From positions 248,001 to 312,000 of the forward strand of contig NIVC01000221.1 in assembly GCA_002269645.1 (NCBI GenBank): a stretch of DNA of 64,000 bases. Reading direction: 5' to 3'. Made by a program: the position numbers and the translations under genes. The notes beneath the pieces are model-generated. The model did not search any database. It saw nothing but the letters and a program-made list of their open reading frames with translations, and had not been told where the DNA came from. Below, one piece after another: positions 1 to 38,802 of the stretch (positions within the stretch are counted from its first letter, which is position 1; each line of letters starts with the position of its first letter). This DNA is from Macrostomum lignano. Its lineage: Eukaryota.

Positions 1-832
1 CTCAGGAGTTTGTTCAAAAGCAGTCTGGTGAAAGAGAGAGAATGAAAAGCGAATTGTTTAGGTTCCGATGGAGGGAAGCGAGGTCTTGTCAGCATTAGAG
101 GCTCAAGTACAAATTTTGTGGTTCTCAATAAACTACACCTCCTGAGTCAACCTTAGCGTTATCCAAATCGCAGAGTAGACAGACCGACAGCTGGAAAAAA
201 TATCAGATAACATTCATAGTAAAAAGAATGAATGTCCAGATATCTGAGTTTGCAACCATTGAAGTTCAGGAAACTGGGAGGCTAGACATCTGACTGGTGA
301 CAGTGAATTTACGGAAAGCGGAAACACTCTCATCTGTAGCAGATTTGCTGCTGGGAAGAAAAACTGGAGCATCTCCCTGATGCCTCTTGTGAGCGCATAC
401 AAAAAACGGAGAAGAAATTTTAGCCGTCTTCCGGCAAATTCACCTGCAGAAATGTGGAAACAGGTTGGAAAAACAAAGCTGTGAGACACATGCTGCCAGC
501 TTCTGTAAAAACTCGCTGCTAAAGAAGCAATTCAAAAATGCTTTTGCAAGCAGGTGATCGCCTCAGTCTCTCCCTGCCTCTTCTTGCCCAGCGTAATTGA
601 CGATGATTCAGTTCTTTTATGTTGGCTGTTTGAAAGCTCGTTAATCGATATTTCAAACACAGTTTGTACTTAAAGTAGCATATCAGTTATCTACACAGAT
701 CTTAGCTCAAAGCGCAGTGATACATGTAGATCTGCAAATAACCTATCAGATTAGCCCACTGAAAAACTATATAAAGCTGTGCAAAGTCGTCTAGTGAGCA
801 GGAGCAAGAAGCCCAGGTATACAATTTTAAAC

Positions 833-1551
833 ATGTTCTACAGACATTCAGTCGTTCTGGTCGCTGTATGCACCTTCTTTGTCCTCGCCGCTGGCAGGGT
901 GATAGAGTTTTCTTACGTTGGCTGCTTTAAAGACGAAGGAAGCAACAGAGCCTTAAACGGATTCGTGGATGTCACAAGCGTTGGCCGATACGGGAACACA
1001 GTACATTCGGCCATCCGTAATAGCGGGATGACCCACGAAATGTGCGGCAGCATTTGCTCCTTGGGCGGATTCCTAGCTGTTTTTCGGGGTGCAGCACCTA
1101 CTGCTACTGCGGCTCATCCTATGGCTCAGTCGGATCAGTCGCTGACAGCCTGTGCAGCACTGTGAGCTCTGGAAACTCCAGTCAAATGTGTGGAGGCAGT
1201 TACAAAAACTCAGTTTTCGCTTTGACCTACCCGAGTGAGTGTTCATACTAAAAGTGTAAACTGTTAGCGACCAATGAATCAACGTGGGCCTATTCCCTAA
1301 ATTATTTCATTTCGCAATTTCAGATAGCAAATGTTTTCAACAGACTGCCAGGCAAACCCTCACAGTGACTGCCTCGCGACAGATCCACTGGACCCGCCCT
1401 ACAGGTTACCTGTGTGATGCTGTGCGAGGCCTCAGCTGAGTGCCAGGCTGTGATTTTCTCTGGCCAGCAGCGCCTGTGCCACCTGCTGAGGTTCGCCTAC
1501 CCGCCTGCACACCTGAGCAGCACCGATGGGGTGTACTATGTTCGTGGCTGA
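833..1551 (+). pseudogene. WSC-PAN secreted protein, subtype A copy 1 (A1), frameshifted
   Basis: Exons 833-1234 and 1324-1551 (GTGAGT donor 1235, TTTCAG acceptor 1323). Versus A2 it has a +4 insertion (~1075) and a 5-nt deletion (~1098) in exon 1 (net -1), an 8-nt deletion in exon 2 (~1400), and one WSC Cys lost (TAC->VSS). Confidence 0.85.
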
Positions 1552-2544
1552 GACTTGAAATAAGAAGATCTATTTATTTAATAGAAGATAAGACGCAAAT
1601 TAAAACCCTACAAATGTGCATGCTTTGATAATGATTTTCAAAATCAAACCTATATTTTTCTCAACAAAACATACTTGACTACAGCTAATCCCCCCATTAA
1701 CTCACGCTGGCACACGGCTTAAGAGTTTTGCACGCCATCAGGGTAAAGCAATGGTACAGCCATCAAGCATGTCTGGGACTTAGTAATGCGAAGACGTCAG
1801 TAGGGTGCCTAGCAGAATGCTAAACAGATTTGCGTCTGCCGGTTCTGAATGTCCGGCAGCAGTTGCCATAAGCGTTCATCAACGGGCTGGTGAATCAGCT
1901 GATACCACGACGAGTGACAGCACTTTTGCGTGCTCGTGCATGGTTCCTGGACACGCTACTGAAACTGGAATTAAAGACACTGCCACGTGACAGAGTCAGT
2001 TTGGGGGGGGCGATTAGCTTTACATGCTTGTGTTTAAACAACAGCTAATTATTGTTGAATTTTTGTTTCCTATAAGTCCTGAACTTGTTGTTTTCCATGT
2101 TCAACTGGTCTTAGAAATATTTTCTGATAGGATCCGTATTTTTGAGAGGTTCTTCTCAAAATACACACGAAGAAATACACGTTTCTGGGCACCACATATT
2201 CTTTTCATCCAACAGGCTTGCAATATTTAAGACTTCAAGTCAGAGGCTCAACTACAATTGTGATTCTCACTGTGCATCTCCTTAGTAACCTTGGCGCTAT
2301 CAACATTGCAGAGTAGACGGAAAGACAGGTAGAAATATGCATATCAGATGCCGTAAGAGACCAATTGAGCTGTGGCTGAAATTTTTTACAGCAGTAGAAT
2401 CAGTGAAAACGTGTTAAAAGCGATGTTTTGAAAAAGAACTTATGAGTAGTCAGAAAATTGTATTTGTTGACTAATCGAACATCGACACTGTATGGCTGAC
2501 GTCATATAGAGCGAAATGTGTAAAAACCGTAAGCTCAGATGGTA

Positions 2545-2990
2545 GCCAGACACTTTATTGCAGATAATTTCGGTGCCAAGACAGTTCGAGTGCCAGAGCG
2601 AGTGGCATCTTTAAAAAGAAGAGTGAGTTGCGGAGAGGTGTTTTTCCTTTGGGCATAAAAAATACAAGCTGGCTACGTATAAAAGACAAAAAAAATCGTA
2701 CTTACAAAAAAGCTAAGAAATGCTAAAAAAGACTCACTTGCACTAACTCGTGTGCAAACTAAGAAATGACAAACCGTGTTAATAATGTGTATCGTTACCG
2801 GCTGTATTGGAAAATACCATTCTAACAAAATTCACCAAAACCTGACGAAGACTATAGAATGCAGAATCCAGATATTTTTCTTTTTAATAAATTTGATTAC
2901 TATGCCATTATTCAGTAGCATAAAAACTAGTATGACATGCACCGAAGTGACTTGGCACCGAAATATTTGGCACCGTCGTATCCAGTTTTC
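2545..2990. mobile_element. Possible MITE with imperfect ~40-bp inverted ends
   Basis: TTTCGGTGCCAAG near 2568 and inverted CTTGGCACCGAAA near 2960, with further GGCACCG copies; no TSD identified. Confidence 0.3.
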
Positions 2991-3769
2991 TATCAGACTT
3001 TTGAGGAGCGTGAGAAAGTTACAGGCCTAATTAGGCTGTTATTACAGTGTACTCTTAATTGTTCTCTGAAGCCTCGTCTGAGCTGATGCAGAGAAATGAG
3101 GAGAAATTCAAGCCGTCACAGGCAAACTTTGCCAGCAGGAATGTAGAAACAGGCTGCAAAATCAAACAGAGCGAGCTGTGAGACACGAATTACTTTCACA
3201 GTCCCTGCTTTGTGTAAAAACTGCGCGTTATAGAAACTCGTAAAACTGTATTTAGTGAGTTTCATATTACCACAGCATCGCCCTCGGTAGATATGTTATT
3301 TCTAAAAATTTTAGCGTGATGGAAAACCCAAACAGAGTGAAGGCCTCTGTTACTATGACTACGGGGGAAACTCAAGTGAAAACTTAAGTAAAAGTGTTTA
3401 TTATCAACACTATGAGCGTACGTTATCAGATCCTCCCGCAAGTTTTCTCTTTTTTCAGCTTTGATTGCTCATAGCTTTGGCTGTGATTTCCGAGATATAA
3501 TTACGACATTTCAAAGAGAGCTCAGACGCTGACTAATATTTACTAACACCCCTTACTTAAGATGGGTGTTACGAACATACGTTAAGCCAACAAACATACT
3601 ATACTTTAAGTAAGACTGGCTCATTACGTACATGCACATGGGCCTTCAGAACCTACACTCCAGGACACCATGTGGACTGTGCTTCTTGCAATTTCTAATC
3701 ACCTAGATGTTCTATTATTTTGCCCTGTCTCCTTTCTGTTTCTGCCTCCGCAAAATATATGTAGCCCTT

Positions 3770-4370
3770 TTCCTTTGCTCATACTCCACCCCCTTGGTTC
3801 GGCAGGCATCTTGGTGATGACCGAACTTCTGTCACTTTGAGCACTGGTGGGGTCAGGTGGGGACACTTTGCCGCCCAGTGAGACTGGGAGCCCAAAGAAA
3901 GCTGGCCCGATCACGAGGATTCCGTGTTTTGGCTGCCTTCTCGTGCTTGACGTCGTGACTTGGTAATTTCACTTTGCTGATGGCGTCTGTTCCTCTCTCC
4001 GCTGTCTCCAAGATGACCGCGATCTTGTGGAAGCTGCTCGGAGAGTCGTCTGGAGCAGGCGTCTCTGAATCTGCGAATTACGGAGCCCGGTCACCAGCTT
4101 GTCTCTCGGTGCTTCATCCAGGATTTTCTCAGTTGTTCCAGATAATGGCTGATGCTCTCGCTCTCGTGCTGACTGCGCCGGTAGAAAATTGAACCTTCTT
4201 CACCACCTTTCAAAGCTTGGGGTTAAAGTGCTCCCGGAGAGTCTTGATGATGTCAAGAGGTCTCCTTCGGCTTCTTTGGGGCCAACAGATCTCGCAACAT
4301 TGTCACTGTTGTAACGTTCGAGAGTCCTGGCATGTCTAATTTAATGAGCCGCTGCTGCGAGCACATTTAT
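3770..4370 (-). mobile_element. gag: Degenerate Ty3/Gypsy (Mag-like) gag fragment
   Basis: Minus-strand peptides LRDLLAPKKPKET, FYRRSQHESESISHYLEQLRK, LDEAPRDKLVTGLRNSQIQRRLLQ and a broken CCHC knuckle CSK*QKFGHHQDAC, with stops and frameshifts. Paralogous copy at ~22510-22970. Confidence 0.7.
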
Positions 4371-4480
4371 GCATACTTTGCTTTCTCTGCTCGACCCTCG
4401 ACTCTATGGGACCGCTCTTTGAGCCATAGATAACAGCATTAAAAGGGACAAATGAAGCAATATAAGTTACAGTTGGAAAT

Positions 4481-4551
4481 GAGTAGGTCCGGATGAAGCT
4501 CTGAGGCTAAGTGGGTCTGGATGAAGCTGTGAGGCTGAGTGGGTCTGGATG
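4481..4551 (+). repeat. Orphan ~2.5 units of the 28-bp stop-codon minisatellite
   Basis: GAGTAGGTCCGGATGAAGCTCTGAGGCTAAGTGGGTCTGGATGAAGCTGTGAGGCTGAGTGGGTCTGGATGA with no exon 2 in front of it. Confidence 0.85.
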
Positions 4552-5070
4552 ATTAAGAGTTTCAAGATAAAATGGTTGAGGTTTACCAGCTAATATTTCG
4601 AATTTTCTTTTTTGCCTAACTAAACGTGCAGTTTTTCTTCTTGTTTTTTTATTCAGATTATTCCAACTTTGCAGGTAGTCTTTTTAGTTGTAATATTCGG
4701 TTGGAATAAACCCTAAGAAACACTCTTTCCTATATTATTCATTCAAAGTCAATTTTGACTCCAATTCAAATACAGTGCCAGAGATTTGCCTGATATTCTC
4801 CTCTTGCTACTCATCGGTAGGCATCTCTCACGCACATCCAGGTGACACCTCAGCCAATCCTTGCACAGCATTGGCTGAATGGGACAGCATGAAGCGTACT
4901 TGCTAAATACTACAAAAGCCAGCGTCTCCTTGTTTTCCACTTCTAATTCTGCTAGGTGGTCCATATTACCATTGGCTTCTTCCAGCAAATATATTGTTTA
5001 GGTTTCTTGCTTGAAACAGAAGAAGCGTCTCAGAAACTGCCGTTCGGCCACTCTCTGGGATTTTTTCCCA

Positions 5071-5906
5071 ATGCTGAAACTCTGCGCTCTGCTGCTCTGC
5101 TGGGCAGTCGGTTCCGGACGCTGCGCCGCTGCTGCGGAGCCGCCTCAACCGTTGGAGTTTCGCCACCTCGGCTGCTACGTGGATGGCGCTGTTGGCAACC
5201 GAGATCTTGTAGGACTGCAGGGGGTCAAAAAGTTCGGACAGTTTGAGACTCACCCTACTAACCCAGCTTTCGCTTTTGACTTCGCCAAGATGACACTGCA
5301 ACTTTGCAGCCAGATGTGCTCTTACGGCCGATTTCGCTACTTTGGAGTTCAGTCTGCGGCCTTCTGCTGCTGCGGCTCGGCCTACGGATCGCACGGCACC
5401 GCGCCGGCTAGCGACTGCAGCAGAGCTTGCAGTGGAGCCCTGTCTCAGATTTGCGGTGGAGAGTCGAGAAATTCGATCTACGAGTTGACTTATTCACCAA
5501 GTAAGCGTTGCGAATTAAAGCAGCTCGTAGAAGTGTAAAGATAGTCTCACTTAGCCAGACGACGTAAAACGCTGCAGATGTTCTAAAGTCGTCCTTAAAT
5601 GTAGTTCGGACTGGGCCATTTCAAATATCAAAACAATTTTTTGTAACCAACCCTTCTGCAGTCGATCCAATGATGCCGAAACTGCCCGTGACGTCTCTGC
5701 CGAACATCACAGCCTCCGCGAGCTCAGTCACCCACAGCAGCGTCTCTGCCAAGAGTGCCATCCAGTGCGCTGCCGCCTGCCAGCGAAGCCCGGACTGTCA
5801 GGACTGCGCCTTCGTGCCTTCGAGCCGCATGTGTCGCCTGCTGAGATTCGCCGCTGTGCCCGCTGAGGTGGCCAGCGAGGCTGATTGGGTCTGGATGAAG
5901 CAGTGA
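5071..5906 (+). CDS. WSC-PAN secreted protein, subtype B copy 1 (B1), 224 aa
   Basis: Exons 5071-5500 and 5662-5906 (phase-1 intron GTAAGC...CTGCAG, 675 nt in frame). Signal peptide MLKLCALLLCWAVG; WSC motifs LGCYVD, MTLQLCSQMC, FGVQ..FCCCG, CSRACSG..QICGG; PAN-like CAAACQRSPDCQDCAF..MCRL. Confidence 0.88.
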
Positions 5907-6240
5907 GGCTGAGTGGGTCTGGATGAAGCTGTGAGGCTGAGTGGGTCTGGATAAAGCTGTGAGGCTGAGTAGGTCTGGATGAAGCAGTGAGGCTGAGTGG
6001 GTCTGGATGAAGCTGTGAGGCTGAGTGGGTCTAAATGAAGCTGTGAGGCTGAGTGGGTCTGGATGAAGCTGTGAGGCTGAGTGGGTCTGGATGAAGCAGT
6101 GACTGAGTGGGTCTGGATTAAGCTGTGAGGCTGAGTGGATTTGGATGAAGCAGTGAGCTGAGTGGGTCTGGATGAAGCTGTGAGGCTGAGTGGTTCTGGA
6201 TGAAGCTGTGAGGCTGAGTGGGTCTGGTTGGAGCTGCGAG
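5877..6240 (+). repeat. 28-bp minisatellite, ~13 units, overlapping the B1 C-terminus and stop
   Basis: Unit GAGGCTGAGTGGGTCTGGATGAAGCTGT; the first unit encodes EADWVWMKQ and its stop spans the unit junction (T|GA). Confidence 0.95.
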
Positions 6241-7053
6241 TCTGTTCGATTTAATGGCAAACACTGATAGGAGTTCTGAATGATAATCCTGACGTACTTT
6301 TAAAAACAAAAGTGATTCATGTATTGGTTCTGTTTCATGTCTTATTATTTATAAAACTATCTAGAATAACAAATGCTATTAAAAGTTTTAAGAGCTTTAA
6401 ATCTTTTATTTTCTCTTAATTGTCCATTGGCAGAACTGTTGTATACGGTATATAAACATATGTTGTGTTATGTGTATTTATAAGCTTTAAATTTTTGGAT
6501 ATTAGTTTACCGTCTATTAAACTAAAACTCCATGGCTAGACTACATGTATATTTTATTCTACGCTTTTCACGTCTTAGGCTATCATTTATAAAGCTATCT
6601 AGAATGACAATTTCAAATCCGAGTTTCGAAGTGTCAAGGTTAAAGAGTTTTAAGTTTTTTCTTTTTGCATTGTTTAGCTACTGTAAAAATTAATGTTTAT
6701 GGTAAAAACTTTAAAATTTTCTGGATACATTACTACTTTACTGTTGTACCATTACGAGTTGTAAGAACTCCATGACTAGTTGACAGTTGGAAAATCATTT
6801 GCAGCCGTACGGCATTTTAACGTTAAATTTTTAAACAAAATTTCAATTCGAGCTAAACGAAGCTCAATTTGGACAATCTAGTGGAGTTCGGTTTTTGCGG
6901 CACTTCAGTTGAAACAAATTCTCTTTCTTACAGGCTAAGTTTTCCGAATTGGAAAATGTTTTCCGACAGTCTATGGCCGAAACCGCTTTTGAGTGGCGAC
7001 TGCGCTCTGATTAAAGCTTCAAGGAAACAGATCAGAGTCACTTTCAGGAGCCA

Positions 7054-7144
7054 GAGAGCGAGAGAAAGAGAGAGAGAGAGGGAGAGAGAGAGAGACAGAG
7101 GGGGGGGGGAGACAGAGAGGGGGAGAGAAAGAGAAAGAGAGAGA
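7054..7144. repeat. (AG)n microsatellite
   Basis: GAGAGA run interrupted by G tracts; related tract at ~31928-31978. Confidence 0.9.
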
Positions 7145-8012
7145 GGTTTCGGTGCCGATCGATGGAAGCGAGCGCTAGTCAGCATCAGAGGCTCAACTAC
7201 CATTGTGATTCTCACTACACCACCTCTCCTGAGTATCCTTGGCGCTATCCACATTGCAGAGTAGACAGTAGAGTGGCAGATTCTTCACTGAGCATAAAAC
7301 AGGAAAATTTCTAAAGCCTATTACGAGCTAATTCTAGGCGTTTGCAAAAATCGAGAAGAAGCTCAAGCCGTCACGGGTGAAATCAACAGCAGGAACGCAG
7401 AAGCAGCCGCTGCAAAAAAACAGCGCTGCACGACATGTCCCCAGCTTTTTCTAAAAAACCCACGCATCATAGAAAAGCTTCAATTTTTCTCAGAATGCAA
7501 AATTCTTCCCAGATGAGTCAGGTACATTAGTGTTAATGAGAAAAGACAAGTTAAACTTACTGTAGTTTTACTACTAAAAATAGCTCATTCAGTGTCCCAC
7601 CGGTTGCGCATTCAACAAGAAAGTACAAGCCGCCAATACACTTTGCTTTAAACTATACGACGTAGAAGACCCATCGATTCATTAAGCAATCACCGATCAC
7701 TGAGCACCGAGAAACAACACTTGAAATGGTTTACCAAACAGGCATCATCACTTTAGCGACGTCTGCACCCTGCCTGCGTCGCTGGCAGTGTTGGTTGAAT
7801 AACTTCTACTACTTTGTTGGAACGCGCTCTGTAATTGGTAGATATTTCATTATATAGTACTTTAGCGCGACGGACATCCAAACAGAGTGAATGCCTCCAC
7901 CATATACTAAAAACGGTCTGTCGGTATCTAGGTAGGTAGAAAGATATGTGATCGATTAGTGATAAAAATGGCTCAACCAATTTTCTCGGAGTTTGATCGA
8001 ATAACTTGAATC

Positions 8013-8212
8013 GCACTTGATAAGCCAAGGATTATTGCACTTGATAAGCCAAAGATTATTGCACTTGATAAGCCAAAGATTATTGCACTTGATAAGCCAA
8101 GGATTACTGCACTTGATAAGCCAAGGATTATTGCACTTGATAAGCCAAGGATTGTTGCATTTGATAAGCCAAGGATTATTGCACTTGATAAGCCAAGGAT
8201 TATTGCATTTGA
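8013..8212. repeat. 24-bp tandem repeat, ~8 copies
   Basis: Unit GCACTTGATAAGCCAAGGATTATT. Confidence 0.95.
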
Positions 8213-8225
8213 CTTCAGATGCCAC

Positions 8226-8590
8226 ATGTTGAAAGACAATGGCTATCTACTGGCGCTGTAGCACAGCTGGCAGTTTCTTAAAATTCTACTTCGATTGAAG
8301 CACCGCTCGCTTCCGATACACGCCTTAGTTCCGAGAAGTCGCTACACTGGACGCCTCGCTGACAGCAAGGAAAAACAGCGATAGAGACCTGCAAGGACTC
8401 GAATGTGTCACGGCGTTTCGCCGGTACACAGTTGACCGCCTTCGTCAAGAGCACGAAAATAACACTGCAGAGGTGTAGCGGTTTCATGCTCGGTTCTGCT
8501 TTTTTGGTGTTCAGGCGGTCGACGAGGGAGAATATGCGGCCCGTGCAGTGACATCTGCAATGGCGCTAACTGGATCATTTCCATCTTGTA
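8226..8590 (+). pseudogene. Highly decayed WSC exon-1 relic
   Basis: With stops and frameshifts it reads SRYTGRLADS, DRDLQGLECV, AFVKSTKITLQRCS and RFCFFGVQA, matching family motifs FRYIGCFVDS, NRDLVGLQGV, FLVRDSSMTLQMCS and RFRYFGVQS in the same order. Confidence 0.55.
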
Positions 8591-8613
8591 AATCACCATT
8601 TGATAGTTAAAAA

Positions 8614-9268
8614 TCCTCAATTTTGAACGAAGTCGAGTTAAATTCGAACCAAAATAGACTTGAATTGAGACATTTCAGTGGAATGTGTTTCTTTGAGGAA
8701 ATTCAATCAATTTAAACGAACTACTTTTCTATTGGCTGAGTTGTCTGAATTGGAAAATCTGTTGAGACAGTCTATGGCCAAAATCGCTTTTAAGAGGCCT
8801 CGGCAGCTCACTAATGCGAACTGATTTTTAGACAATGAGCGGGACGTGTGTCCTGCCAACTGTCTCTACAAGCCATCCTCTTCACCAGCCTCTTCCTTGA
8901 TTTCATTTTCTCCGACAATCTCAGTGTCAAGGCAAATCCTGTCCGCCTCATCTTTATCCGCACTCATGACGATGGCATTTGGATTTCTATCCAATTCGAT
9001 GAGTTAAACAGGCGGTTGGAGTCGCACAATACGAGTATTCCGTCGATTCTGCTTCATTTGAACTTCAATTCAGCGAGCTGTCGCCCCTGAAAAGCGGTTT
9101 TAGCCATAGACTGTGGCAATAAATTTTCCAATTCAGAAAATGTAGTCATTAAAAAAGGGAGTAGCTTATTTGAATTGAATTCCCGTAATAATCAAAATAC
9201 ACTGGATAGGAACTCGATTGAAGTTGTTGTAGTTTGAATTGAACTCGATTTTGTTTAAAATTGAGGGT
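8614..9268. mobile_element. MITE/foldback element with ~190-bp imperfect terminal inverted repeats
   Basis: Left CCTCAATTTTGAACGAAGTCGAGTT...AGTCTATGGCC (8615-8800) mirrors right GCCATAGACTG...AACTCGATTTTGTTTAAAATTGAGG (9085-9268). Partial relatives at ~6840-6995 and ~26470-26790. Confidence 0.6.
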
Positions 9269-9432
9269 AAAATGATGTAATACTCTTATAGTATGGGTAT
9301 TATTTTTTCTATTCATACAAATAATCCATGTGTTTTAGTGATTTACGACTAACATTTATTCAGAGCAAATGGCGTTTTTATTGATACGGCCTAATGATGC
9401 CTAATGACGCATCGCATGATTTGCTTTTAAAT

Positions 9433-9815
9433 CGCGGATCGGCAAACCCCGCCCCACGCGCAACATGCGGCCCGCGCAGCCTCTCTATTCGGCCCTCCGG
9501 TCCTTTAAAACTTCACAACGGCAATCCGGCCCTTATGTGGCTAGTCAACTCTTTATCCCCTCTTCTTTCCCTTCTCTCCCCTCCTCTTTTCTCCTCTTCT
9601 CCTCTTTCCCCTTTCTCTCCCCTCTGTCGGCTTCTCACATTTTCCCTCTCTCCGCTTCTTTCCCCTCTTTCCCTCCTCTCCCGTCTTTCCCCTCCTCTTG
9701 TATTTCCCCTCTTCACTACCTTCTCTTTCTTATCTCTTCTGTCATCCCATCTCTCGACTCTCATCTCTTGTCTCATCTCTCATTTTCCATTCCTCTCCTC
9801 TTCCAGTTATTCAAC
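9433..9815 (+). mobile_element. hAT-Charlie-like MITE remnant with internal CT-rich tract
   Basis: GGATCGGCAAAC...CATGCGGCCCG 5' end followed by a CT-rich tract; right TIR missing; paralogue of 27000-27465. Confidence 0.5.
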
Positions 9816-10140
9816 AATAACTGACTGGTGAATTTTCTCATAAAAGCCTAGACGAAAACGTTTTCACGGCTCAAACGTATTGTCCCCACTCCCTTGTAAT
9901 TCTAGTTGCTAGGGCGAATGTCATCTTTTGGCCCGACATCCTACTCATGCTGCTTGACGAGCGCACAACCCTTGAGGTCAACTCTTTTCACAGCTGCTGT
10001 TGAACTTGTAAATCAAACACGTTCTACCCCGATAATTGGCATCGCAGAGTTTAATTTCACCAAAATACGACTGACGTGATATATTTGCGTTAGAATGTTG
10101 TTCTGAACTGTGAGATTAGTCTGGAGTTCTAGCCTAGTGA

Positions 10141-10500
10141 GGGGGTTGTAGCCTTAGTGGCTAAATTGTCAGACTCACGACAGAAAGGTCGGTAGTTCGA
10201 TTCTCGGCCCGCTCAGAAAAATCTGTGTCCTTGAGCAAGACACTTAATTCTACATTGCTTCAGTTCACCCAGCGGTAAAATGGGTGCCAGCATTAGCTGG
10301 GGTAAATGAGGGTGTGTATGGTGACCCCCCAGTCCTTGGACTGAACAGCCGTACGCAGCCTTCAAATGCGCCGCGCAATAGCTGCGGTTGAGCTGTCGGT
10401 TGCACATCTGGCCATTAAAGCGGGTTTAATTAATTATTAATATTATTGTTATTATTATGACTATTACTACTTATTACTATTATAATAATTATTATTATTA
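10141..10500 (+). mobile_element. tRNA-derived SINE (family 1) with Deu/Nin-like central domain
   Basis: A-box-like TAGCCTTAGTGG, B-box-like GTTCGATTC, central GTGTCCTTGAGCAAGACAC...AAATGGGTGCC and (TTA)n tail. The domain name is from memory of SINE superfamilies. Confidence 0.7.
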
Positions 10501-11265
10501 GGTGGCAGTAACTTAAGTCGTTGTTTCGGTTGCCGTTTGAGTAGTTCCTGCTATAAGCTGAACAGATAATTTTATGTGTAAGAATAGCATAGAATAGAAT
10601 AGAATAGAATAGTAAGAATAGAATAAGAATACGGATGCAACAATTACAACACACTGCACCTTGCTAGCTATCAAAGAATGATGCCTGCTACCCCACCTTT
10701 TGTCCTGACGCGCGCACGCTTAACAGACATGAGACACTCAATTCTTGAGGAAATCTTATGAAAAACAACTGCTGTTGAACTTGTAAATGAAGCGAAATTC
10801 AACCTCTTATCTACACAACACGGAGAAACTGATGCGAAGGCAGTTAAGCCGACCAGTTAAGAAAATAACATCATTTCCTTTTTTGTCTACTTACAAGTAG
10901 CGGTTATAAAAGTTTTAGAATGAAGTCCAAATAGGAGTATTATTTTGTTAGACTTTAGATTAAATACATGTACGAAGTATTTAGCTTTGTGTGGCCTTGC
11001 GCTTCAGTAGCGACTCCAAAGGATACATGAAGCTCGATCTTCAGAATCGAGAAACTGGTAATCTGCTTGCAGCCTTGTCGGGGTTGCTGTCAATTCTGCT
11101 AAAAATGCTGGTTTGTACTCTAAAGATGAACGGCGACTGTGTCCATAAAATTTGACTGCTAGAAGCATTTGACACTGATCAAGTACATGTAAATTACCAT
11201 GCTTTAAAAGCTTGCACGCATATAAATATTATGATACTTAAGTGGCTTGATCTGCGATTGCAATG

Positions 11266-11465
11266 CCACCAACACTCTGTAACACCCCGAGTTGAGAGTG
11301 GCGTGTCTAACAGGCACCAACACTCTGTAACACCCCGAGTTGAGAGGTGGCGTGTCTAACAGGCACCAACACTCTGTAACACCCCGAGTTGAGAGTGGCG
11401 TGTCTAACAGGCGCCAACACTCTGTAACACCCCGAGTTGAGAGTGGCGTATCTAACAGACACCAA
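11266..11465. repeat. 48-bp tandem repeat, ~4 copies
   Basis: Unit CACCAACACTCTGTAACACCCCGAGTTGAGAGTGGCGTGTCTAACAGG; the paralogous site ~28850-28950 has only ~2 diverged units. Confidence 0.9.
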
Positions 11466-12491
11466 CACCCTGGACACACCCCCGACTTGGGCGTATACTT
11501 GGCATCAACACAATGCCATCATAAGCAACACAGGAATATTCTGCCAGGTGGTACACTTAAATGATTCGAGGCTCAAATCCGACAACTCACAAGCGTCTGA
11601 GCGAGGAGCTGCATCGACTGCTCAGCGAGGCGGAATCCATACGAACTGTTGAACTTCCAGAACAAGCAAGAACTTCAGACTGGGTTTGAAGGTTCTGCTT
11701 TCTCTGCGACTCTCACGCATGATTTTCAACCCTAATATAAGCCAGCATATTTTGCAACACTACACAGCACACGAATGGTAGTACGAGTATAGATTAAAAT
11801 ACACTTACATTTATATTAAATATAGTTAGTTGTACACCTCGGGTGGCTTTAAAAATGAGTGTTAATAATTATAATTACTTTCTTCACTGATATTCCTTGT
11901 GGCGATCTTTAAATAAGGTAATTCCTTGTTGCGAATGGATTCCGGGTTTGAATGTATTTTTGAAAAACGATCCAAACTTGCATCGATGAAAATTATCCAA
12001 ACTCAAGATCATTTTTTTCGGCAAAAAATATAAAATCCAGTATAATTTTTGCAGAAAAATTGCTCGATAAATTATAAAAGCACAAATTTGCCTTATTTCG
12101 AATGCATTAGTCAGAACAAGGACATGTAAGATGTCGTGAAATTTGTGCTTAAAACGAGAATTTCCTATCTGACAAATGCATGTTGAAAACCGCCGTGAAA
12201 ACCGCGGCCTTTGAGCAGTAAAAAGCACCGTGAGACTAACTTGTCTGGCAGCGTCCACAACTCTTTTTTAGTGGTCCATGAGGGCAACACGGGCTTACAA
12301 GAGAGCCAGATGCAGCTGATTTCTCACTGGCTCAGGCCCCTAGAAACCAGACAGACATTCTCGAGTCGAGAAGACTCCAGATGCTGTTGCAATCAAAACA
12401 TAAGCCATACAGACAGGGTTCACAGCACAGAGCTAGAATATTCTGAAGAGTCAAAACTTCAAACACTGACCGCAAAGACCAGAGGCATCAA

Positions 12492-13480
12492 ATGTCTTCA
12501 AAAAGCTTTTCTGTCGGTTACTTGCTGATGTGGGCGGCGTTCGGAAGCTGCTTGACTTCTGTGCCGCCTCATCCGACGGCATTCCGCTACATCGGTTGCT
12601 ACGGGGCCTCCGCGGACCCCGACATGGCAGGTCTCGTTGGAGTCGCTACGCTCGGTCCGTATTCGACCTTTTCAGAAAAACCATTTCTTGTACGAGACTC
12701 TTCGATGACGCTGCAGATGTGCAGCCAGATCTGTGCTTATGGGAGATTTCGATACTTCGGTACGAGGTACCGTGCATACTGCTGCTGTGGCAACAGCTAC
12801 GGCTCGTTCGGTCCCGCCCCGGAGAGTGACTGCTCGCATAATTGCTACGGAAACTCATCCCAAATCTGCGGTGGAATTCAGAGGAACTCCGTCTACGAAA
12901 AAATTTATAATCATGGTGAGAGCATTATTCTGAACTTTTCTGAAGCGGATTTGGTTTCTTCTTGCCATGACGGGGAACAATAAGTTATAACGTCAAAAAC
13001 TGTCACCACGAAGCTAGATACCAGTGACAACTTAACCAATTCTCTAACTAACTAAAATTAACTAACTCAAATTAACTAACTCATTTTCTTTTTAAAACTC
13101 TGCTGCGAACACACTCTTGGATAATACAGACTGAATAATTCACAGAGATTTGCCCATATAAATACACTCCAAATATAGTATTTTTAGTTTTGAGGAAATT
13201 TTTTTCTAAATTCTGTTGTAACGCATCTTTTGTAGCTGGCCAAGCAGTGACCAAGCTGCCAGCTTCTGCCATGCCGAGCATCTCAGCTTCACTGAGCTCC
13301 ATCACCCACAGCAGCGTCTCTGCCAAGAGCGCCGTCCAGTGCGCTGCCGCCTGCCAGCGAAGCCCGGACTGTCAGGACTGCGCCTTCGTGCCTTCGAGCC
13401 GCATGTGTCGCCTGCTGAGATTCGCCGCTGTGCCTGCTGAGGTGGCCAGCGAGACTGAGTGGGTCTGGATGAGGCTGTGA
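12492..13480 (+). CDS. WSC-PAN secreted protein, subtype C copy 1 (C1), 222 aa
   Basis: Exons 12492-12915 and 13236-13480 (GTGAGA...TTGTAG, phase 1, 669 nt). Hydrophobic leader, WSC Cys pattern intact (but GCYGA instead of GCFVD), PAN-like exon 2. Confidence 0.87.
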
Positions 13481-13856
13481 GGCTGAGTAGGTCTGGATGA
13501 AGCTGTGAGGCTGAGTGGGTCTGGATGAAGCTGTGAGGCTGAGTGGGTCTGGATGAAGCTGTGAGGCTGAGTAGGTCTGGATGAAGCTGTGAGGCTGAGT
13601 AGGTCTGGATGAAGCTGTGAGGCTGAGTGGGTCTGGATGAAGCTATGAGGCTGAGTAGGTCTGGATGAAGCTATGAGGCTGATTATGTCTGGATGAAGTT
13701 ATGAGGCTGAGTAGGTCTGGATGAAGCTGAGGCTGATTATGTCTGGATGAAGTTATGAGGCTGAGTAGGTCTGGATGAAGCTGTGAGGCCGAGTGGTTCT
13801 GGATGAAGCTGTGAGGCTGAGTGGGTCTGGATGAAGCTATGAGGCTGAGCTGGTCT
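13451..13856 (+). repeat. 28-bp minisatellite, ~14-15 units, overlapping the C1 stop
   Basis: Same unit as 5877-6240, with variants GAGTAGG, GATTATG and AAGCTAT. Confidence 0.95.
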
Positions 13857-14482
13857 GCACTGGCAAGCACTGAGAATAATTCTGAGTAATAATCGTAGCA
13901 GGCTAACAAAAATACACGAGAATCATATTTTGGCAGTGCTTTGAGTGTTTATGAGTGTTTCTAATATCAACTGCAAATCTGAAACTTTAAGCCAGGGTCT
14001 CTTAATTTATTGAGTCGACAAATTGAGAGCCGTTCTGAGACACCTGGACCCAGACAGTGTTGAGTTGACGGGTGTTCATCAGACGCCAATGCAGGACGAA
14101 ACGACAGGCCAGATCCAGTGATTGTGCAGCTTCGAGCGCAGTTGAAGAGAGCCACGGGCCCGATGTGTCAATTGATGACAGCCCGATGGTGATTGTATCT
14201 CAGGAATTTGTTCAAAAGCAGTCTGGTGAAAGAGAGAGAAAGAAAAGATAATTGTTTAGGTTCCGATGGAGGGAAGCGAGCTCTTGTCAGCATAAGAGGC
14301 TCAAGTACAAATTTTGTGGTTCTCAAGAAATTAAATATATATTTCCTTACTATTTGTGAATGACTGTTTATTTATTTCCAGAAGCCTGGTAGATTCAAAT
14401 TTGGATTTTCTTTGATTCTTTTTGCCCTTCTGCCGCGCGCCTCTGACTGTTAGTTCTCACGTTTACTTGGCACCATAGTTAA

Positions 14483-22970: not shown

Positions 22971-23149
22971 CCCGGCCGAGTCTTGCTTCCTCTGCTCGAC
23001 TCTAGACTCTGTGGGACCGCTCATGCACATCAAGGTGAGACCTCAGCCAATCCATGCACAGCATTGGTGGTCCATTTTACCATTGGCTTCTTCTAGCAAA
23101 TATAGTGCTTAACTTTTTTACCTGAATCAGAAGAAGCGTCTCAGAAACT

Positions 23150-23447: not shown

Positions 23448-24551
<1,104 letters not shown>

Positions 24552-24790
24552 TGAACTTTTTGAAGACAGTATCAGAAATTTTTCAGATATATTCTTGTCT
24601 TGCTACTCATCAGTGGTCGATATCTTTTTCCTATTAGGGTGAAACCTCAGCCAATCCTAGCTCAGCATTGGTGGTCAATTCTCCATTGGCTTCTTCCAGC
24701 AAATATACTACCTACCTAAATTTCTTACCAGAACCAGAAGAAGGGTCCTCAGAAACTGTAGTTCGGCCACTCTCTAGTTTTTTTTTCCCA

Positions 24791-25672
24791 ATGCTGAAAC
24801 TCTGCGCTCTGCTGCTCTGCTGGGCAGCCGGTTCCGGACGCTTCGCCGCTGTTTCCGTGCCGCCTCAACCGTTGGAGTTTCGCCACCTCGGCTGCTACGT
24901 GGATGGCGCTGATGGCAACCGAGATCTTGTAGGACTGGAGGGAGTCAAAAAGTTCGGACAGTTTGAGACTCACCCTGGTTTCCCAGCATTTGTCTACGAT
25001 GGCGCCAAGATGACACTGCAACTGTGCAGCCACATGTGCTCTTACGGCCGATTTCGCTACTTTGGAGTTCAGCTCCACAGCTTCTGCTGCTGCGGCTCGG
25101 CCTACGGATCGCACGGCATCGCACCGGCTGGCGACTGCAGCAGAGCTTGCAGCGGGAACTCGTCTCAAATTTGCGGTGGAGCTTACAGAAATTCTATCTA
25201 CGAATTGACTTACTCACCAAGTAAGCGTTCCGGATTAACGCAGCTTGTACAAGTGTAAACACAGGTTGCGTAAATTTAGCGAAGGACGACCTAAAAACAC
25301 TGAACTCTTTTTTCATTAAAATCAGTTCTCATTGGGAGATTTTACAAGCAATATTCGAATTGATTTGACCGATAAAAATATTAACAATAATATTGGCATG
25401 CCATATTTTCAACCAACCCTTCTGCAGTCAATCCGGTGATGCCGAAACTGCCCGTGACGTCTCTGCTGAACATCACAGCCTCCGCGAGCTCCATCACTCA
25501 CCGCAGCATTGCAGCCAGCAGTGCAGTTGAATGCGCCACCATCTGCTACGGCAGCCCGGACTGTCAGGGCTGCGCCTTCGTGCCTTCGAGCCGCATGTGC
25601 CGCCTGCTGAGATTCGCCGCTGTGGCCGCTGAGGTGGCCAGCGAGGCCGAGTGGGTCTGGATGAAGCTGTGA
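24791..25672 (+). CDS. WSC-PAN secreted protein, subtype B copy 3 (B3), 224 aa
   Basis: Exons 24791-25220 and 25428-25672 (GTAAGC...CTGCAG, 675 nt in frame); all WSC and PAN Cys present. Confidence 0.88.
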
Positions 25673-25871
25673 GGCTGAGTGGGTCTGGATGAAGCTGTGA
25701 GGCTGAGTGGGTCTGGATGAAGCTGTGAGGCTGAGTGGGTCTGGATGAAGCTGTGAGGCTGAGTGGGTCTGGATGAAGCTGTGAGGCTGAGTGGGTCTGG
25801 ATGAAGCTGTGAGGCTGAGTGGGTCTGGATGAAGCTGTGAGACTGAGTAGGACTGGATGAAGCTGTGAGAC
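25643..25871 (+). repeat. 28-bp minisatellite, ~8 units, overlapping the B3 stop
   Basis: Nearly perfect GAGGCTGAGTGGGTCTGGATGAAGCTGT units. Confidence 0.95.
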
Positions 25872-26999
25872 TGTTCGAACTAATAGCAAACACTGAAAAG
25901 AATTCCGAGTAAGTAATTATCGTGGCGAACCTATACCAAAAATACACGAGAATCAGATTTTGGCTGCGCGTTATGTCTTATTGTTTATGTAGCTACCTGA
26001 AATAACAACTGCAAATACAAAGTTTCAAGTGTCTTTTTTCTACGAATTTTTCCCTTTTATTTTAATATTTAGCCTGATATCCGACATGAACCACAGACAG
26101 GTATTTGACGACTTGAGTTAGGGTGCATTCTGCATAACGACGTAAATGATGGTCCAGTGAAGCGAAGCAAGAAGGAATATAAAACTGTATCTTGGAGTTG
26201 GTGCAGTGTCGGTAGAAGTTTTTTTGGAATATCTAGCTGAGGTCCTCTTAGCCTTTCGCAAGCTAAAATCAATTTGTAGTTTGCAAGTGACTGTAGCCCC
26301 AAACTTTTCACCTGGAATGAAATACATAATCTCTTCTTTAGCCATTCGGAATTCCAAAAGATGAGGTAAATGGAAATCAGTATAGAAAAACACAAAGCTT
26401 CCGATGTCTCTGATGCATATTGCAGCGAAATACAGGCCTCAAGGGACTGTGTTCTGCTACTGTTTCTCCACAAGCCATCCTCTTCACCAGCCTCTTCCTT
26501 GATTTCATTTTCTCCGACTATTTCAGTTTCAAGACATATCCTGCCGGCCTCATCTTCATGCGCACTCATGGCGATGGCTGTTAGATCTCTATCGAATTCG
26601 ATGAGTTCGATTGATGAGCCGGTTGGAGTCACACAATACTCTATCGACTCTGTTTCTGTTGAACTTCAATTCAGCGGGCTGTCGCCATTGAAAGGTTTTG
26701 GCCATAGACTGTTGGAATGAATTTTCCAATTCAGACACTGTAAGCCTATAGAAAGCAGGTAGTTTGTTTAAATTGAATTATCGTGGGAATGACAATCCAC
26801 TACATTGGAACTTTGTAGTGCTTTTATAGTGTGAGTATTTTTTTGTATTCATCCCAATAATGCATCTGTTTTAGTGACTCACGACTCAGTAACATTTATT
26901 CAGAGCAAACGACTCAGTAACATTTATTCAGAGCAAATGATGTATTTATTGCTTAATGCCTTAAGCCTGCATCTCATGATTTTCTTTTACGAGCTAGAT

Positions 27000-29385: not shown

Positions 29386-30326
29386 ATGTCTTCAAAAAGC
29401 TCTTCTGTAGGCTACTTGATGATGTGGGCGGCGTTCGGAAGCTGCTTGACTTCGGTACCGCCTCATCCGACGGCATTCCGCTACATCGGTTGCTTCGTGG
29501 ACTCTGCGGACCCCGATATGGCAGGTCTCGTTGGAGTCACTGCACTCGGTCCGCATTCGACCCATTCAGAAAATCCTTTTCTTGTTCGAAACACTTCGAT
29601 GACGCTGCAGCTGTGCAGCCAGATCTGCGCTTATGGGAGATTTCGGTACTTCGGTACGAGGTACCGTGCATACTGCTGCTGCGGCAACAGCTACGGCTCG
29701 TTCGGTCCCGCCCCGGAGAGTGACTGCTCGTATTATTGCTACGGAAACTCATTCCAAATCTGCGGTGGAATTCAGAGGAACTCCGTCTACGAAAATATTT
29801 ATAATCAGGGTAAGAGTGATTTTTCTGAAGCGCTTGTTGTTTTTCTTGCCATAACGAGGCACAGTACGTTCTAACGTCGTTAAAACGTCAACAACTCTCA
29901 CACGAAGCTGGATGCCAGTAACAAATTAACTATTTCTAAGATGTTCTTTTTAAAACTCTGCTGCAAATGCACACTTTTTGAAAATGCCTATTGAATAAGT
30001 CACAGAGATTTGCCCATATAAATGCGCTCCTATTTGTGACGTAGTTTTTTTACTGAATTCTGTTTTAATTCAACTTTGCAGCTGACCAAACAGTGACAAA
30101 GCTGGCAGTTTCTGCCATGCCGAGCATCTCAGCTTCACTGAGCTTCATCACCCACAGCAGCGTCTCTGCCAAGAGCGCCATCCAGTGCGCTGCCGCCTGC
30201 AAGCGAAGCCCGGACTGTCAGGGCTGCGCCTTCGTGCCTTCGAGCCGCATGTGCCGCCTGCTGAGATTCGCCGCTGTGCCCGCTGAGGTGGCCAGCGAAG
30301 CTGAGTGGGTCTGGATGAAGCTGTGA
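29386..30326 (+). CDS. WSC-PAN secreted protein, subtype C copy 2 (C2), 222 aa
   Basis: Exons 29386-29809 and 30082-30326 (GTAAGA...TTGCAG, 669 nt in frame); canonical YIGCFVD. Only ~1.5 units of the 28-bp repeat (30297-30340). Confidence 0.88.
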
Positions 30327-32484
30327 GGCTGAGTGGGTCTGTTCGATGTAAATGAAAAAAACTGAGAAGAATTCTGAGTAATAATCGTAGCAAACGTCAA
30401 AAGTACACCAGAATTATATTTTGGCTATGCTTTATTGTGTTAAGCAATTTCAAATATCTACTTCAAATTTGAAATTTTAAGAGTGTCTTAATTGATTGAG
30501 TCGAAAAAATCAGTTACATGTAAATTACGTTTTTGGATAGTTATTTGGATAGTTTACCGTCGATTTAACTAAGAACTCCATGGCTAGACTATGTCTTGTG
30601 CTGTGCTTTGGCTAAGGTTTCTGTCTTATTATTTATAAAGCTATCTACATTACTCGTAACAAACGCAAATCCAAGGTTTTAAAAGTTTTAAGAGCTTTAT
30701 TTTATTGTCTTTTCATTTTCTATTTTCAGAACTTTTGTGTATGGTATAGAAAACATATTCTGTTATGTGTATCGAAAATCTCAGCTTTTGAATACTGGGT
30801 TCACCATCTATTTAACCAAGAACTGTATGACTAGAATATGTCTTATGCTATGCTTTGGCTATGGTTTCTGTCTTATTATTTATAAGGCTGTCTATAATAA
30901 CAAATGCAATTTCAAACTTTAAAGTGTCTTTATTTTCTTAATTTGTAAAAAAAGATTTTTAACGGAAATAGACACCTGTTTCCACCTTCTAGCTCGTATC
31001 TATAGGGATAGCTGGTGTTGAGACATCTCAACATCAATGAGCTGAGGTAAGAAGCCCGAGAGGGTTGCTTCACAAACGTGAAATTTCACAACAGCTAAAT
31101 CACCTACTTTCATAAACGCGATACTTCACGAATCATAACCGAAAAAAAATTGCCGTCACTTTCACAACAACTAATTAATGTCTTCAAATTTTACAACCGC
31201 TAAACTTCACTTTAGCTGAATGTCATCTACTTTCTTTTTAGTAGAGCGCCAACTTGGCACAGATACGAGAATGGTAGGTTTTCCTGTTTTGTAATAGTGA
31301 CGAGAAGAGTTTATTTATACATTCGCATTCTCGGGGCCTTCATAAGACAGAAATTTCACATCGTAGAAAACTTACGATATCAAGGACCATGCAGAATTTT
31401 CGGCGTTATGAAATTTCGGTCTTGTGAAAGCGACCCGTCTTCTCTTCCGTAAGTTATGCGAAAAATTTTTTGTGTACCCGAGCTATATCTGCCAATATCC
31501 ACCGGTTGTGTAAGTTTCGCGTTTATGAAAGCAAGTGCTGGTAGCGGTTTTGAAATTTTGCGTTTGTGAAACCCACCCGCCCGGAGATAGAAAAATAAAG
31601 AGAGAGGTTTTGGTGCCGATCGATGAAAGCGATCGAGCGCTTCACGGCAACAGAGGCTCAACTAGCTCGTACCATTGCGATTCTCACTACACCACCTCCC
31701 CCACTGAGTCTTTGGTGCTATCCACATTGTAGAGTAGACAGTAGAGTTGTTGGATTCTTTGCTGAACAGAAAATCTTTAAAAATTGTAGAGCCTCTTCTA
31801 GGCGTATGCAAAAAATCGAGAAGAGGCTCAATCCGTCACGGGTGAATTCGCCAGCACGTGAATGCAGAAACAGGTGCTACTGGGAAATACAGCGCTGCGT
31901 GACACATGCTCCCAGCTTTTTCTCCAAAAGAGAGAGAGAGGGAGGAGAGAGAAGAGAGGGGGAGAAGAGAGAGAGAGTGAGGTTTGGATGCCGGTCGATC
32001 ACAGCGAGCGCTTGACAGCATCAGAGGCTCAACTACCATCGCGATTCACACTACACCACCTCCCCGCCCCCCTGAGTAATCCTTGGCGCTATCCACACAT
32101 TGTAGAGTAGTAGATTCTTTGCTGAGCAGAAAAACTGGAGAAATTGAAAAGCCTCTTCTACGAGCGTAGACGTATGCAAAAAAACAAGAAGAAGCTCAAA
32201 CCGTCACGGGTGAATTCATCAGCAGAAACGCAGAAACAGCTGCTGTTGGGAGCTAAAAGAAAAAACCCACGCATCATCGAAAGCTTCAAAGTGTTTTTTT
32301 TTCAGAATGCGAAACTCTTCCCAGATGAGTCAGGTAAAGTAAATGTTAGATTAGAAAAGACAATTGATAAAAATTACTGTAGTTTTCTACTACTAAAAGA
32401 AAACTTTCTAAAAGTAGTTGCTCATCTGGTGCAATCAACAAGTTAAGACCTTGTTTTATAAACTATAGAAGACACATCGATTCA

Positions 32485-37432: not shown

Positions 37433-38802
37433 ATGCTTGGGCTAGTGTTTATTCGAGCATCCTGCATCCTGGCTGTTCTGGCAGCCAGTGTGTTCACCAG
37501 AGAGGTCCAGTTCTCCTATGTCGGCTGCTACAAGGACAACTCAGTCAGGGACTTGGACGGACTGGGTGGCGTGAGCAGAATCGGTGAGTTCAGCGTCACA
37601 ACCGGAGTGAAGAGCAACCAGCAGAGTCACGAGCTGTGCAGCAGCGTCTGCTCTCTGGGCGGCTTTCCGTACTTTGGCGTCCAGGTGGGCCGTCAGTGCT
37701 TCTGCGGCAAATCCTATGGATCGCGCGGAGCTGCTGCTGAGAGCGAATGCAGCACCGCTTGCCGCGGAAACGGCTCCCAGACATGCGGAGACGCGTACAA
37801 GAACTCCGTGTTTGCGCTGACCTACCCGAGTGAGTGGCGATATGCCGACTTGCAGCTGGCGATGAGGCTAGCACGAATGGCTATTCTGTTTACTCCTGAG
37901 CACTTTGCTTTGCTAGCGGAGATTCTAGACATAGACAATAAGGTTAAGGCCGTGAGCCAGAGTGAGGTTGATTGAACACTTTCTTCTACCATAGACAAAA
38001 CGTGTCCCGCGAATACAGGGAGCGGAGAATACTCATAGTCTCCGCGAATCCAGTCAATATTCTCCGTTCCTTGCATTCGTGGAATTACACTTCAATAACC
38101 AACTGAAACGAGGAGAATGTCTATGCAGAATCTCCGAGGCAACAGAAAGTACCAAAGGAAAAAATGCGAGCGAAGCGAGCATAGACATTCTCCTCGTTTC
38201 AGTAGATTATTATACATACTTCTCGTTCCTTGTTAGCTTGGTGATTTTGTTTCCTTTTGAAAGTTTTGAAAGGGATTAACGTTTAACCAACAAAAGTAAT
38301 CACCCTTTGATCTTAATTACGTAGTTTCTATCCAATGAATTATTGCTAATCTGATTTCATTTATCTTCTTTCTGCATGTAAGTACCATTACCTTCTTCAA
38401 ATTTACAATTTGGAAGTGACCTACAAAGTTGAAAATCTGGCAACCAGCATCCTACAATTAAGTATAACTGCAGTTAGTAGTCACTGCAGGACTTCAATTA
38501 GCCTGTCTAACGCTCATGCAGCATCTCGCACATGTAATTCAACAATGCTTCAACCGAATTTCGCAGACAAAATCTGCTTCAGAAGGGCTGCCATGCCGGC
38601 CCTGACGGTGGAAGCGACCTGGCTGACCTACTGGAGTCGAGCAGCAGCAGCCGATGTTGGCTTCGTGACTCTGTGCGAGGCCAACCCCGACTGCCAGGCT
38701 GTGATTTTCTCTGGCCAGCAGCGCCTGTGCCACCTGCTGAGGTTCGCCTACCCGCCTGCCAACCTGAGCAGCACCGATGGAGTGTACTTTGTTCGAGGCT
38801 GA
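37433..38802 (+). CDS. WSC-PAN secreted protein, divergent subtype A copy (A3), 210 aa
   Basis: Exons 37433-37829 and 38567-38802 (GTGAGT...TCGCAG, 633 nt in frame); leader, YVGCYKD, full WSC Cys set; exon 2 has F where A2 has its second Cys (DVGFVTLC vs DVTCVMLC). Confidence 0.85.

Follow-up and report, generated by a model that had tools for sequence, protein, structure and literature searches.

Variable number tandem repeats (VNTRs) are known from gene ends, and examples are the 40-bp VNTR in the 3' untranslated region (UTR) of SLC6A3 and the 28-bp VNTR of HRAS1. A minisatellite of comparable anatomy is present in Macrostomum lignano at the end of a gene that is here called B1. It lies in a window of 64,000 nucleotides, which is the whole stretch of DNA that was analysed (GCA_002269645.1, NIVC01000221.1:248001-312000, + strand). 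As in the gene-end VNTRs, head-to-tail units in the range of 10-60 bp follow one another at the 3' end of a transcription unit, with G-richness and strand asymmetry, fast copy-number change and interspersed internal variants. However, the unit at this locus consists of the last 27 coding nucleotides plus the stop, and the first unit is translated and under selection. Unlike the VNTRs of single loci, the array also recurs, always in the same phase, in five or more paralogues. By anatomy it is a minisatellite, and by tests of synonymous divergence (dS) and mosaic structure it lies within a gene-conversion island. The known kind is the 3'-UTR minisatellite; what is new is that this one is derived from coding sequence (CDS), carries a stop codon and is in phase across a gene family. 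A literature search found no paper on this array or on a minisatellite of terminal codons plus stop, and this silence is weak evidence of novelty.

Repeats at the edges of converted segments are a second point of comparison. In 1980, Slightom et al. reportedly described a (TG)n run in the second intervening sequence (IVS2) of the human G-gamma and A-gamma globin genes that bounds a conversion tract. The M. lignano locus is similar in having tandem duplicates and a sharp converted segment, one edge of which is at a repeat proposed as the initiator of recombination. The globin repeat is a dinucleotide run in an intron, whereas the repeat described here is a CDS-derived 28-bp minisatellite and, judging by the A genes of the same cluster, is dispensable. 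In yeast, Paques, Richard and Haber are said to have found in 2001 that minisatellites change size by out-of-register gene conversion, through synthesis-dependent strand annealing (SDSA). Conversion through an array in this way leads to expansion, contraction and polar homogenisation, and a similar mechanism may act at this locus by analogy. Trypanosome variant surface glycoprotein (VSG) cassettes are a further example, in which upstream 70-bp repeats and a conserved 3' coding/UTR end delimit duplicative gene conversion. Both systems have a large family of secreted or surface proteins with variable bodies, and repeats or end-blocks that supply homology for exchange. However, VSG exchange is part of programmed antigenic variation with an expression site, and its repeat is upstream while the repeat here is downstream. 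In the BEX/WEX/GASP genes, coding/non-coding chimaerism is reported to be sustained by gene conversion that is limited to part of the paralogues, with the rest diverging, as is found here (PMC1274310). Those genes differ in the region and the organism concerned, and a minisatellite is not involved.

The window carries a cluster of small two-exon WSC + PAN/Apple genes. Exon 1 encodes a hydrophobic N-terminus and a WSC domain (PF01822, 46-55 bits), and exon 2 encodes a linker followed by a PAN/Apple domain (PF00024). A segmental duplication is apparent, in which approximately positions 1-14000 (A1, B1, and C1) correspond to 18700-30500 (A2, a partial B2, B3, and C2). The B1 gene and its array are made up as follows.

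5071..5500, plus strand: B1 exon 1, with a signal-peptide-like N-terminus and a WSC domain (Pfam WSC, 4.8e-12), GT donor at 5501
5662..5906, plus strand: B1 exon 2, with a linker and a PAN/Apple domain after a phase-1 intron (Pfam PAN_1, 1.4e-6, 28.5 bits)
5877..6244, plus strand: B1 minisatellite, 13 units of 28 bp (5877-6237) and a 7-nt stub

The WSC cut-off of 27.8 bits was passed by exon 1 of both B1 (46.4 bits) and A3 (55.1 bits). The PAN_1 match of 28.5 bits compares with a cut-off of 21.4 and covers profile positions 12-56 of 76, so that 20 profile positions remain for the last 20 residues. Phase-1 introns with GT-AG boundaries are present in the models of B1, B3, C1, C2, and a paralogue on another contig (L001). 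In all five models, exon 2 before the repeat is exactly 215 nt.

The consensus of the B1 array is GAGGCTGAGTGGGTCTGGATGAAGCTGT, which encodes EAEWVWMKL plus a T. Tandem Repeats Finder (TRF) reported 13.2 copies of the 28-bp unit with 90% matches and a score of 596. When GAGGCTGAGTGGGTCTGGATGAAGCTGT was searched for as a pattern with up to three mismatches, 35 matches were found in the window against 0.00 expected. All 35 are on the + strand, and they are confined to five places. Unit 1 (5877-5904), read in the frame of the PAN exon, gives EADWVWMKQ, and the B1 stop codon is formed by T5904 and by GA5905-5906 at the start of unit 2. A preliminary description of this DNA had claimed that the unit encodes EAEWVWMKL with a T|GA stop completed by the next unit, and the unit parse and translation bear this out. 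It had also claimed a TGA in the other two frames. This is correct, as the consensus has TGA at unit positions 6, 20, and 28|1-2, one per frame. Since the point at which the unit of a tandem repeat is taken to start is arbitrary, a stop completed by the next unit is equivalent to a stop codon that belongs to the unit. The duplication boundary shows a GA microhomology. The Gln variant of the unit, AAGCAGTGA, has an A at unit position 26 and is found in B1 units 1, 4, 8, and 10. The last three of these are the recurrences at about 5981, 6093, and 6147 that had been noticed earlier.

The other family members in the window have arrays of very different size, and one array stands apart from any gene end.

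13451..13857, plus strand: C1 minisatellite, 14 units and a 17-nt stub, 14.6 copies by TRF
25643..25873, plus strand: B3 minisatellite, 8 units and a 7-nt stub, 8.2 copies by TRF
30297..30341, plus strand: C2 array, the coding unit and a 17-nt partial second unit, 1.6 copies
4475..4556, plus strand: orphan array of about 2.9 units, without a PAN exon

The window pattern search found no 28-bp unit near the ends of the A genes (1551 in A1, 21764 in A2, and 38802 in A3). The copy numbers given earlier (about 13, 14-15, 8, and 1.5, with none in A) are thus refined to 13.2, 14.6, 8.2, 1.6, and 0. In B3, six units equal the consensus exactly, and this near-uniformity of the array suggests that it expanded recently. 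The orphan array was overlooked in the preliminary description, as was the array on the second contig. The orphan is inside a stretch of about 409 bp (4418-4826) that is missing from the duplicated spacer between A2 and B2. It precedes the B1 start codon by about 515 bp and has an AATAAA 149 nt downstream. It may be a relic, or it may be an ectopic copy of the 3' end of another family member. The B2 copy itself, in the region 23184-24549, is a partial B-type exon 1 (23155-23438) that is 94% identical to that of B1 and leads directly into a 1.1-kb (TATC)275 microsatellite (23449-24549). Between B2 and B3, neither an exon 2 nor an array was found.

Outside of the window, the protein P0007 (BOX15_Mlig013640g1) on NIVC01000038.1 is 52% identical to B1. 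It was the only family protein match that was placed on a public contig, and no record was obtained for the protein P0002 or for two open reading frames of the window. P0007 is the L001 paralogue mentioned above, and its gene has an array at positions 10721-11225 of the L001 locus with 17.8 copies in the same phase and a consensus that is identical at 28/28 positions, and its downstream flank is unrelated to the flanks of the window arrays. The in-phase array is thus present in five genes on two contigs (B1, B3, C1, C2, and L001). The four longer arrays (13.2, 14.6, 8.2, and 17.8 copies) have TRF scores of 427-851 and the head-to-tail anatomy of minisatellites. The interspersed variants, higher-order structure and polarity of minisatellites are present as well, in the A26 units of B1, in alternating GAGACTTAG units of the L001 array, and in units that become more degenerate with distance from the CDS.

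The array appears to have originated from the gene. The best protein matches are M. lignano WSC-domain proteins. Where the C-terminus of these is complete, it is either EVASE[AT]EWVWMKL, with variants at single residues, or EAQWVWVKP-like. A-type genes end in STDGVYFVRG followed by a stop at the equivalent position. Because array-less relatives also have this C-terminus and stop, the nonapeptide and stop are ancestral coding sequence and the array is derived. A tandem duplication of 28 bp (the last nine codons and the stop of a gene for a secreted WSC+PAN protein) would have taken place in an ancestor from which the B, C, and P0007-type subfamilies of M. lignano descend. The distal junction GAG[T/A]CTG|TTCGA is common to B1 and B3, C2 has GGGTCTG|TTCGA, and C1 ends in the same 17-nt stub. 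The B and C arrays are therefore of one origin, and C2 has probably contracted. One further M. lignano protein in UniRef, P0014, for which only the protein is available, has the terminal block in the +1 frame (…RRCARRGRQRGPVGLGEAVSLTVNK…), followed by unique sequence. From this protein, it would seem that members of the EAQWVWVKP subfamily lack an array and have no more than a partial second unit.

The 1.6 units of C2 were considered as an ancestral proto-repeat and this was rejected. A periodic sequence of 45 nt is impossible from one clean 28-bp duplication, and the terminal stub of 17 nt that it has in common with C1 makes contraction more likely. It is very unlikely that the array is instead a captured fragment of a mobile element or satellite, with the CDS merely running into it. 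The orphan would fit such a capture, as its 2.9 units are within a 409-bp indel away from any PAN exon. However, the position of nonapeptide and stop is common to array-less relatives of both the A type and the EAQWVWVKP type, which indicates that the CDS came first. In the window, the 35 matches have one orientation and are at only four gene ends and the one orphan, and a scan of metagenome contigs gave 0 matches for the 28-mer. Satellites borne by transposable elements are dispersed, in both orientations and within element boundaries, and the 28-bp unit is not.

The 3' end of the coding sequence is much more alike between family members than the rest of the gene. Two features of B1 are of concern here.

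5787..5906, plus strand: family-wide homogenised block, about the last 34-40 codons (CAFVPSSRMCRLLRFAAVPAEVASEAEWVWMKL), GC-rich
5732..5882, plus strand: C-type conversion tract in the B-type gene B1, with its 5' breakpoint at 5719-5732

Between B and C genes, nucleotide identity is about 71-72% in exon 1 and 67-75% at the start of exon 2. It is 95-99% in the last 75 bp before the array and 73-84% in the 200 bp beyond it. By the Nei-Gojobori method, B and C genes have a dS of 1.35-1.74 in exon 1, compared to 0.04-0.14 over the final 34 codons. The 3'-biased homogenisation that had been proposed earlier is thus present at synonymous sites. Compared to the L001 gene, dS is 1.1-1.8 in exon 1 and 0.24-0.31 in the last 34 codons. 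As the fall is at synonymous sites, it is due to homogenisation and not to selection at the protein level. The terminal block has a GC content of 67-70%, and of 79-88% at third codon positions (GC3), compared to a GC3 of 60-70% in exon 1 and a flank GC of 28-40%. This composition fits with biased gene conversion.

B1 itself is a mosaic. At the positions that distinguish B3 from C1=C2, 22/25 sites are B-type up to exon-2 position 58, and 21/22 are C-type from position 71. The distal junction of the B1 array is B-type, so the 3' end of the tract must be between exon-2 position 125 and this junction. It had been proposed that the ends of conversion tracts be mapped relative to the array. In B1, which has the one datable tract, the 3' end is somewhere in the block or the array. 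The locus thus has the marks of gene conversion, with synonymous identity above that of the flanks and a mosaic paralogue with a mappable breakpoint.

The preliminary description went further and suggested that the array could drive this homogenisation. The A genes, which have no array, do not agree with this.

37433-38802: A3 gene
38687..38802, plus strand: A3 terminal block, homogenised with A2 (21649-21764) and A1 (1414-1551), without an array

In A2 and A3, the last 116 bp of the CDS are 96.6% identical, and the rest is mostly unalignable by blastn. The dS between them is 2.28 in exon 1 and 0.12 in the last 38 codons, and identity falls to 23-28% directly past the stop codon. This island equals that of the B and C genes in size, in strength and in its start at a ...DCQ... 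motif, and the repeat is absent from it. The preliminary description had itself named homogenisation of A3 and A2 without an array as the observation against its model. This is what was found, so the array is not required, and its necessity as an initiator of recombination fails. Thus, the array is probably in the main a product or passenger of the conversion island and not its cause.

In A1, the WSC exon differs from that of A2 by indels of +4 and -5 nt at 1073-1099, a net frameshift. A1 is probably a pseudogene, or else these indels are errors of the assembly. Its terminal block is still homogenised with those of A2 and A3 despite the frameshift.

Gene conversion depends on sequence identity. 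In the simplest account, this dependence would let the conserved end of the PAN domain stay similar enough for continued conversion, while the rest of the gene has diverged beyond reach. The identity of the island is probably kept high by purifying selection, which would act on the C-terminal portion of the PAN domain. In the B, C, and P0007-type genes, the last 28 bp of the island would then have happened to be amplified. The stop codon within the unit, and the TGA in all frames, would leave the protein unchanged at any copy number, and the array would be free to grow or shrink. It is placed at the 3' edge of the island of about 115 bp, a zone of recurrent conversion between paralogues. In the course of such conversion, unequal exchange or repair synthesis that is out of register would change the copy number quickly. 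The same events would homogenise the units near the CDS and occasionally swap variants with the coding unit. With moderate confidence, the array can be regarded as a near-neutral 3'-UTR minisatellite that was born from the gene-conversion island and is churned by it.

The turnover of the array can be followed in its units. C1 and C2 differ by a dS of only about 0.1, yet they have 14.6 and 1.6 copies, and this gap implies fast turnover. Strong differences in copy number are thus seen between recent paralogues within the assembly of one inbred line. Units farther from the CDS are more degenerate (Spearman rho 0.43 over the pooled arrays, p 0.002, n=49). The non-coding units are about 10% diverged and contain premature stops and indels; six C1 units have TGG>TAG, and units of 26 and 27 nt are also present. 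The preliminary description had stated that turnover reaches the coding unit, and this is borne out in two of the four arrays. The variant of the coding unit is the commonest internal variant in B1 (A26, in 3 other units) and in L001 (A4, in 6 others), where such a coincidence has a chance of about 1-3% each by a rough estimate. It is not the commonest internal variant in C1 and B3. Exchange with unit 1 thus seems to occur in B1 and L001, as judged from the pattern of variants. Exchange between arrays was also considered on the basis of common unit variants, and was rejected as not significant (9 against 7-10 expected by chance).

In the earlier model, the array would be a long homology cassette common to dispersed paralogues, G-rich and protected by its stop codons, which promotes recombination by starting or anchoring ectopic exchange and so drives the homogenisation of the 3' block. 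Besides the A2/A3 island of equal size and strength without an array, several results disagree with it. The block is neither longer nor tighter in the genes that have an array, the sharing of unit variants between arrays is at chance, and the downstream flank is not homogenised, which would make any effect one-sided. It was also thought that such a cassette would be damage-free, and this is overstated. An intact nonapeptide and stop would be given in the coding slot by 8/13 units of B1, 6/14 of C1, 7/8 of B3, and 12/18 of L001. Depending on the array, 12-57% of units would break the C-terminus in that position, and many would truncate the protein if copied there. The array is damage-free only for in-register exchange that leaves unit 1 untouched.

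Some observations are in favour of the cassette. The zone of high identity adjoins the array and ends at its distal edge, where 95-99% drops to 73-84%, and to nothing in L001. The 3' end of the C-to-B1 tract is in the block or in the array. Homogeneity is highest in the units proximal to the CDS, and human minisatellites beside hotspots have a similar polarity. The sense strand has a GC skew of about +0.6 in the array. A skew of this kind favours R-loops and breaks, as in immunoglobulin switch repeats. GCTGAGTGG resembles the bacterial Chi site and the minisatellite core, but this was not used as evidence.

Other points weigh directly against the array being a mere passenger. With the arrays left out, the longest exact match between paralogues is 24-37 bp, and in several pairs their inclusion extends it to 63-98 bp; for B3 and L001 it is 24 bp without arrays and 98 bp with them. 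A real contribution of the array to ectopic pairing is possible from these longer matches. A consensus identical at 28/28 positions on two contigs needs either exchange between loci by way of the arrays or constraint on the nucleotide sequence. In addition, the neutrality of the array and its location in the mature 3' UTR are inferred, and the basis is six arrays from one inbred-line assembly. Because of the longer exact matches, the G-richness, the zone that ends at the array, and the identical consensus, the cassette model is retained as an unlikely explanation.

A stronger form is less likely still. In it, the stop-protected array would be a selected cassette through which dispersed members of a fast-evolving family of secreted proteins go on exchanging the ends of their 3' exons across contigs, possibly along with entire PAN modules (as in B1), and the copy number would set how recombinogenic each gene is. 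If this improbable form were true, the cassette would be a metazoan analogue of repeat-bounded cassette exchange.

The array might instead be a functional 3'-UTR element, either a multi-copy site for RNA-binding proteins or small RNAs or a rheostat of UTR length that sets the expression of paralogues. Arrays on two contigs have one and the same consensus unit, and the arrays are always on the sense strand and 5' of candidate poly(A) signals (ATTAAA 141 nt past the B1 array and AATAAA 80 nt past the L001 array). The predicted fold of the array has a z-score of -3.3. However, units decay freely, with indels, stops and about 10% divergence, and 1.6 units suffice for C2, while the A genes do without an array altogether. 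No Rfam families were found in the window, and none matches the array. The predicted helices are interrupted, wobble-rich pairings between repeats, which are expected of any repeat, and an RNA structure of the array was rejected as unconvincing despite the z-score. A function of this type is doubtful, about as much so as the selected cassette.

It is extremely improbable that the 178-aa open reading frame (ORF) at 5724-6260 on the opposite strand is a true gene for a repeat protein, and this candidate was rejected. In the consensus unit, the minus strand is free of stops in all frames, so the ORF is a mechanical by-product of unit composition. It is not kept in C1, where CTAT variants produce a minus-strand TAG and the ORF list has no entry of 90 aa or more. 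A start context or homologue was not found for it.

At the protein level, the AlphaFold2 (AF2) model of P0007 places a strand at WVWM, but the pLDDT (predicted local distance difference test) is below 50 at the C-terminus and 51.9 on average, and the model is unusable. Transcripts with a WSC domain are listed as prostate/seminal-fluid candidates in M. lignano (PMC6953679, PMC4490696, PMC5977470 Table S1). The published primers for Mlig-pro46 and Mlig-pro63 had no match in the window or in the other loci that were compared. The cluster genes are possibly seminal-fluid proteins, which is offered as a lead only. If the family does consist of WSC-type seminal-fluid candidates, the mosaic exchange of PAN modules bears on the diversification of reproductive proteins.

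At present, the array is a well-documented curiosity and does not establish a new mechanism. It is a natural example of a tandem repeat that arose inside a CDS and left the protein unharmed, since each unit includes a stop codon. The locus also shows an island of concerted evolution of about 115 bp, which persists at the end of genes in which substitutions are elsewhere at saturation. The array-less A genes beside the array-bearing B and C genes are a built-in control for the question of whether minisatellites promote ectopic conversion or result from it.

The region in general is rich in tandem repeats. Further minisatellites have a 24-bp unit in 8.3 copies (8013-8212) and a 48-bp unit in 4.5 copies (11267-11482), the second of which has a counterpart in the duplicated segment (28851-29110). 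A 39-bp unit in 6.7 copies (60956-61218) is inside an ORF at 60404-61658, between the long terminal repeats (LTRs) of a retrotransposon. This element is of the Ty3/gypsy type (53605-62823) and has long gag and pol ORFs. Its LTRs (53605-54381 and 62047-62823) are 777 bp in length and 99.87% identical, and it is probably a recent insertion. Just 3' of C1 there is an intact ORF of 548 aa for a piggyBac-type transposase (14777-16423; DDE_Tnp_1_7 at 2.3e-69, with a zinc finger). Two neighbouring ORFs 3' of C2 (32495-33199) have translations that look by eye like the C-terminal part of this transposase. A3 is flanked by a pair of 340-bp inverted repeats (34277-34614 and 39782-40125) that are 94% identical and about 5.2 kb apart.

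A KH-domain gene is also present in the window.

47206-47958, minus strand: KH-domain gene

A second contig, L003 (NIVC01000782.1:191070-213311), matches window positions 37270-51757 at about 87-96% identity, including A3 and the KH-domain gene. It stops short of where the B and C genes would come. A recent genome duplication is known in M. lignano, and the match is consistent with it.

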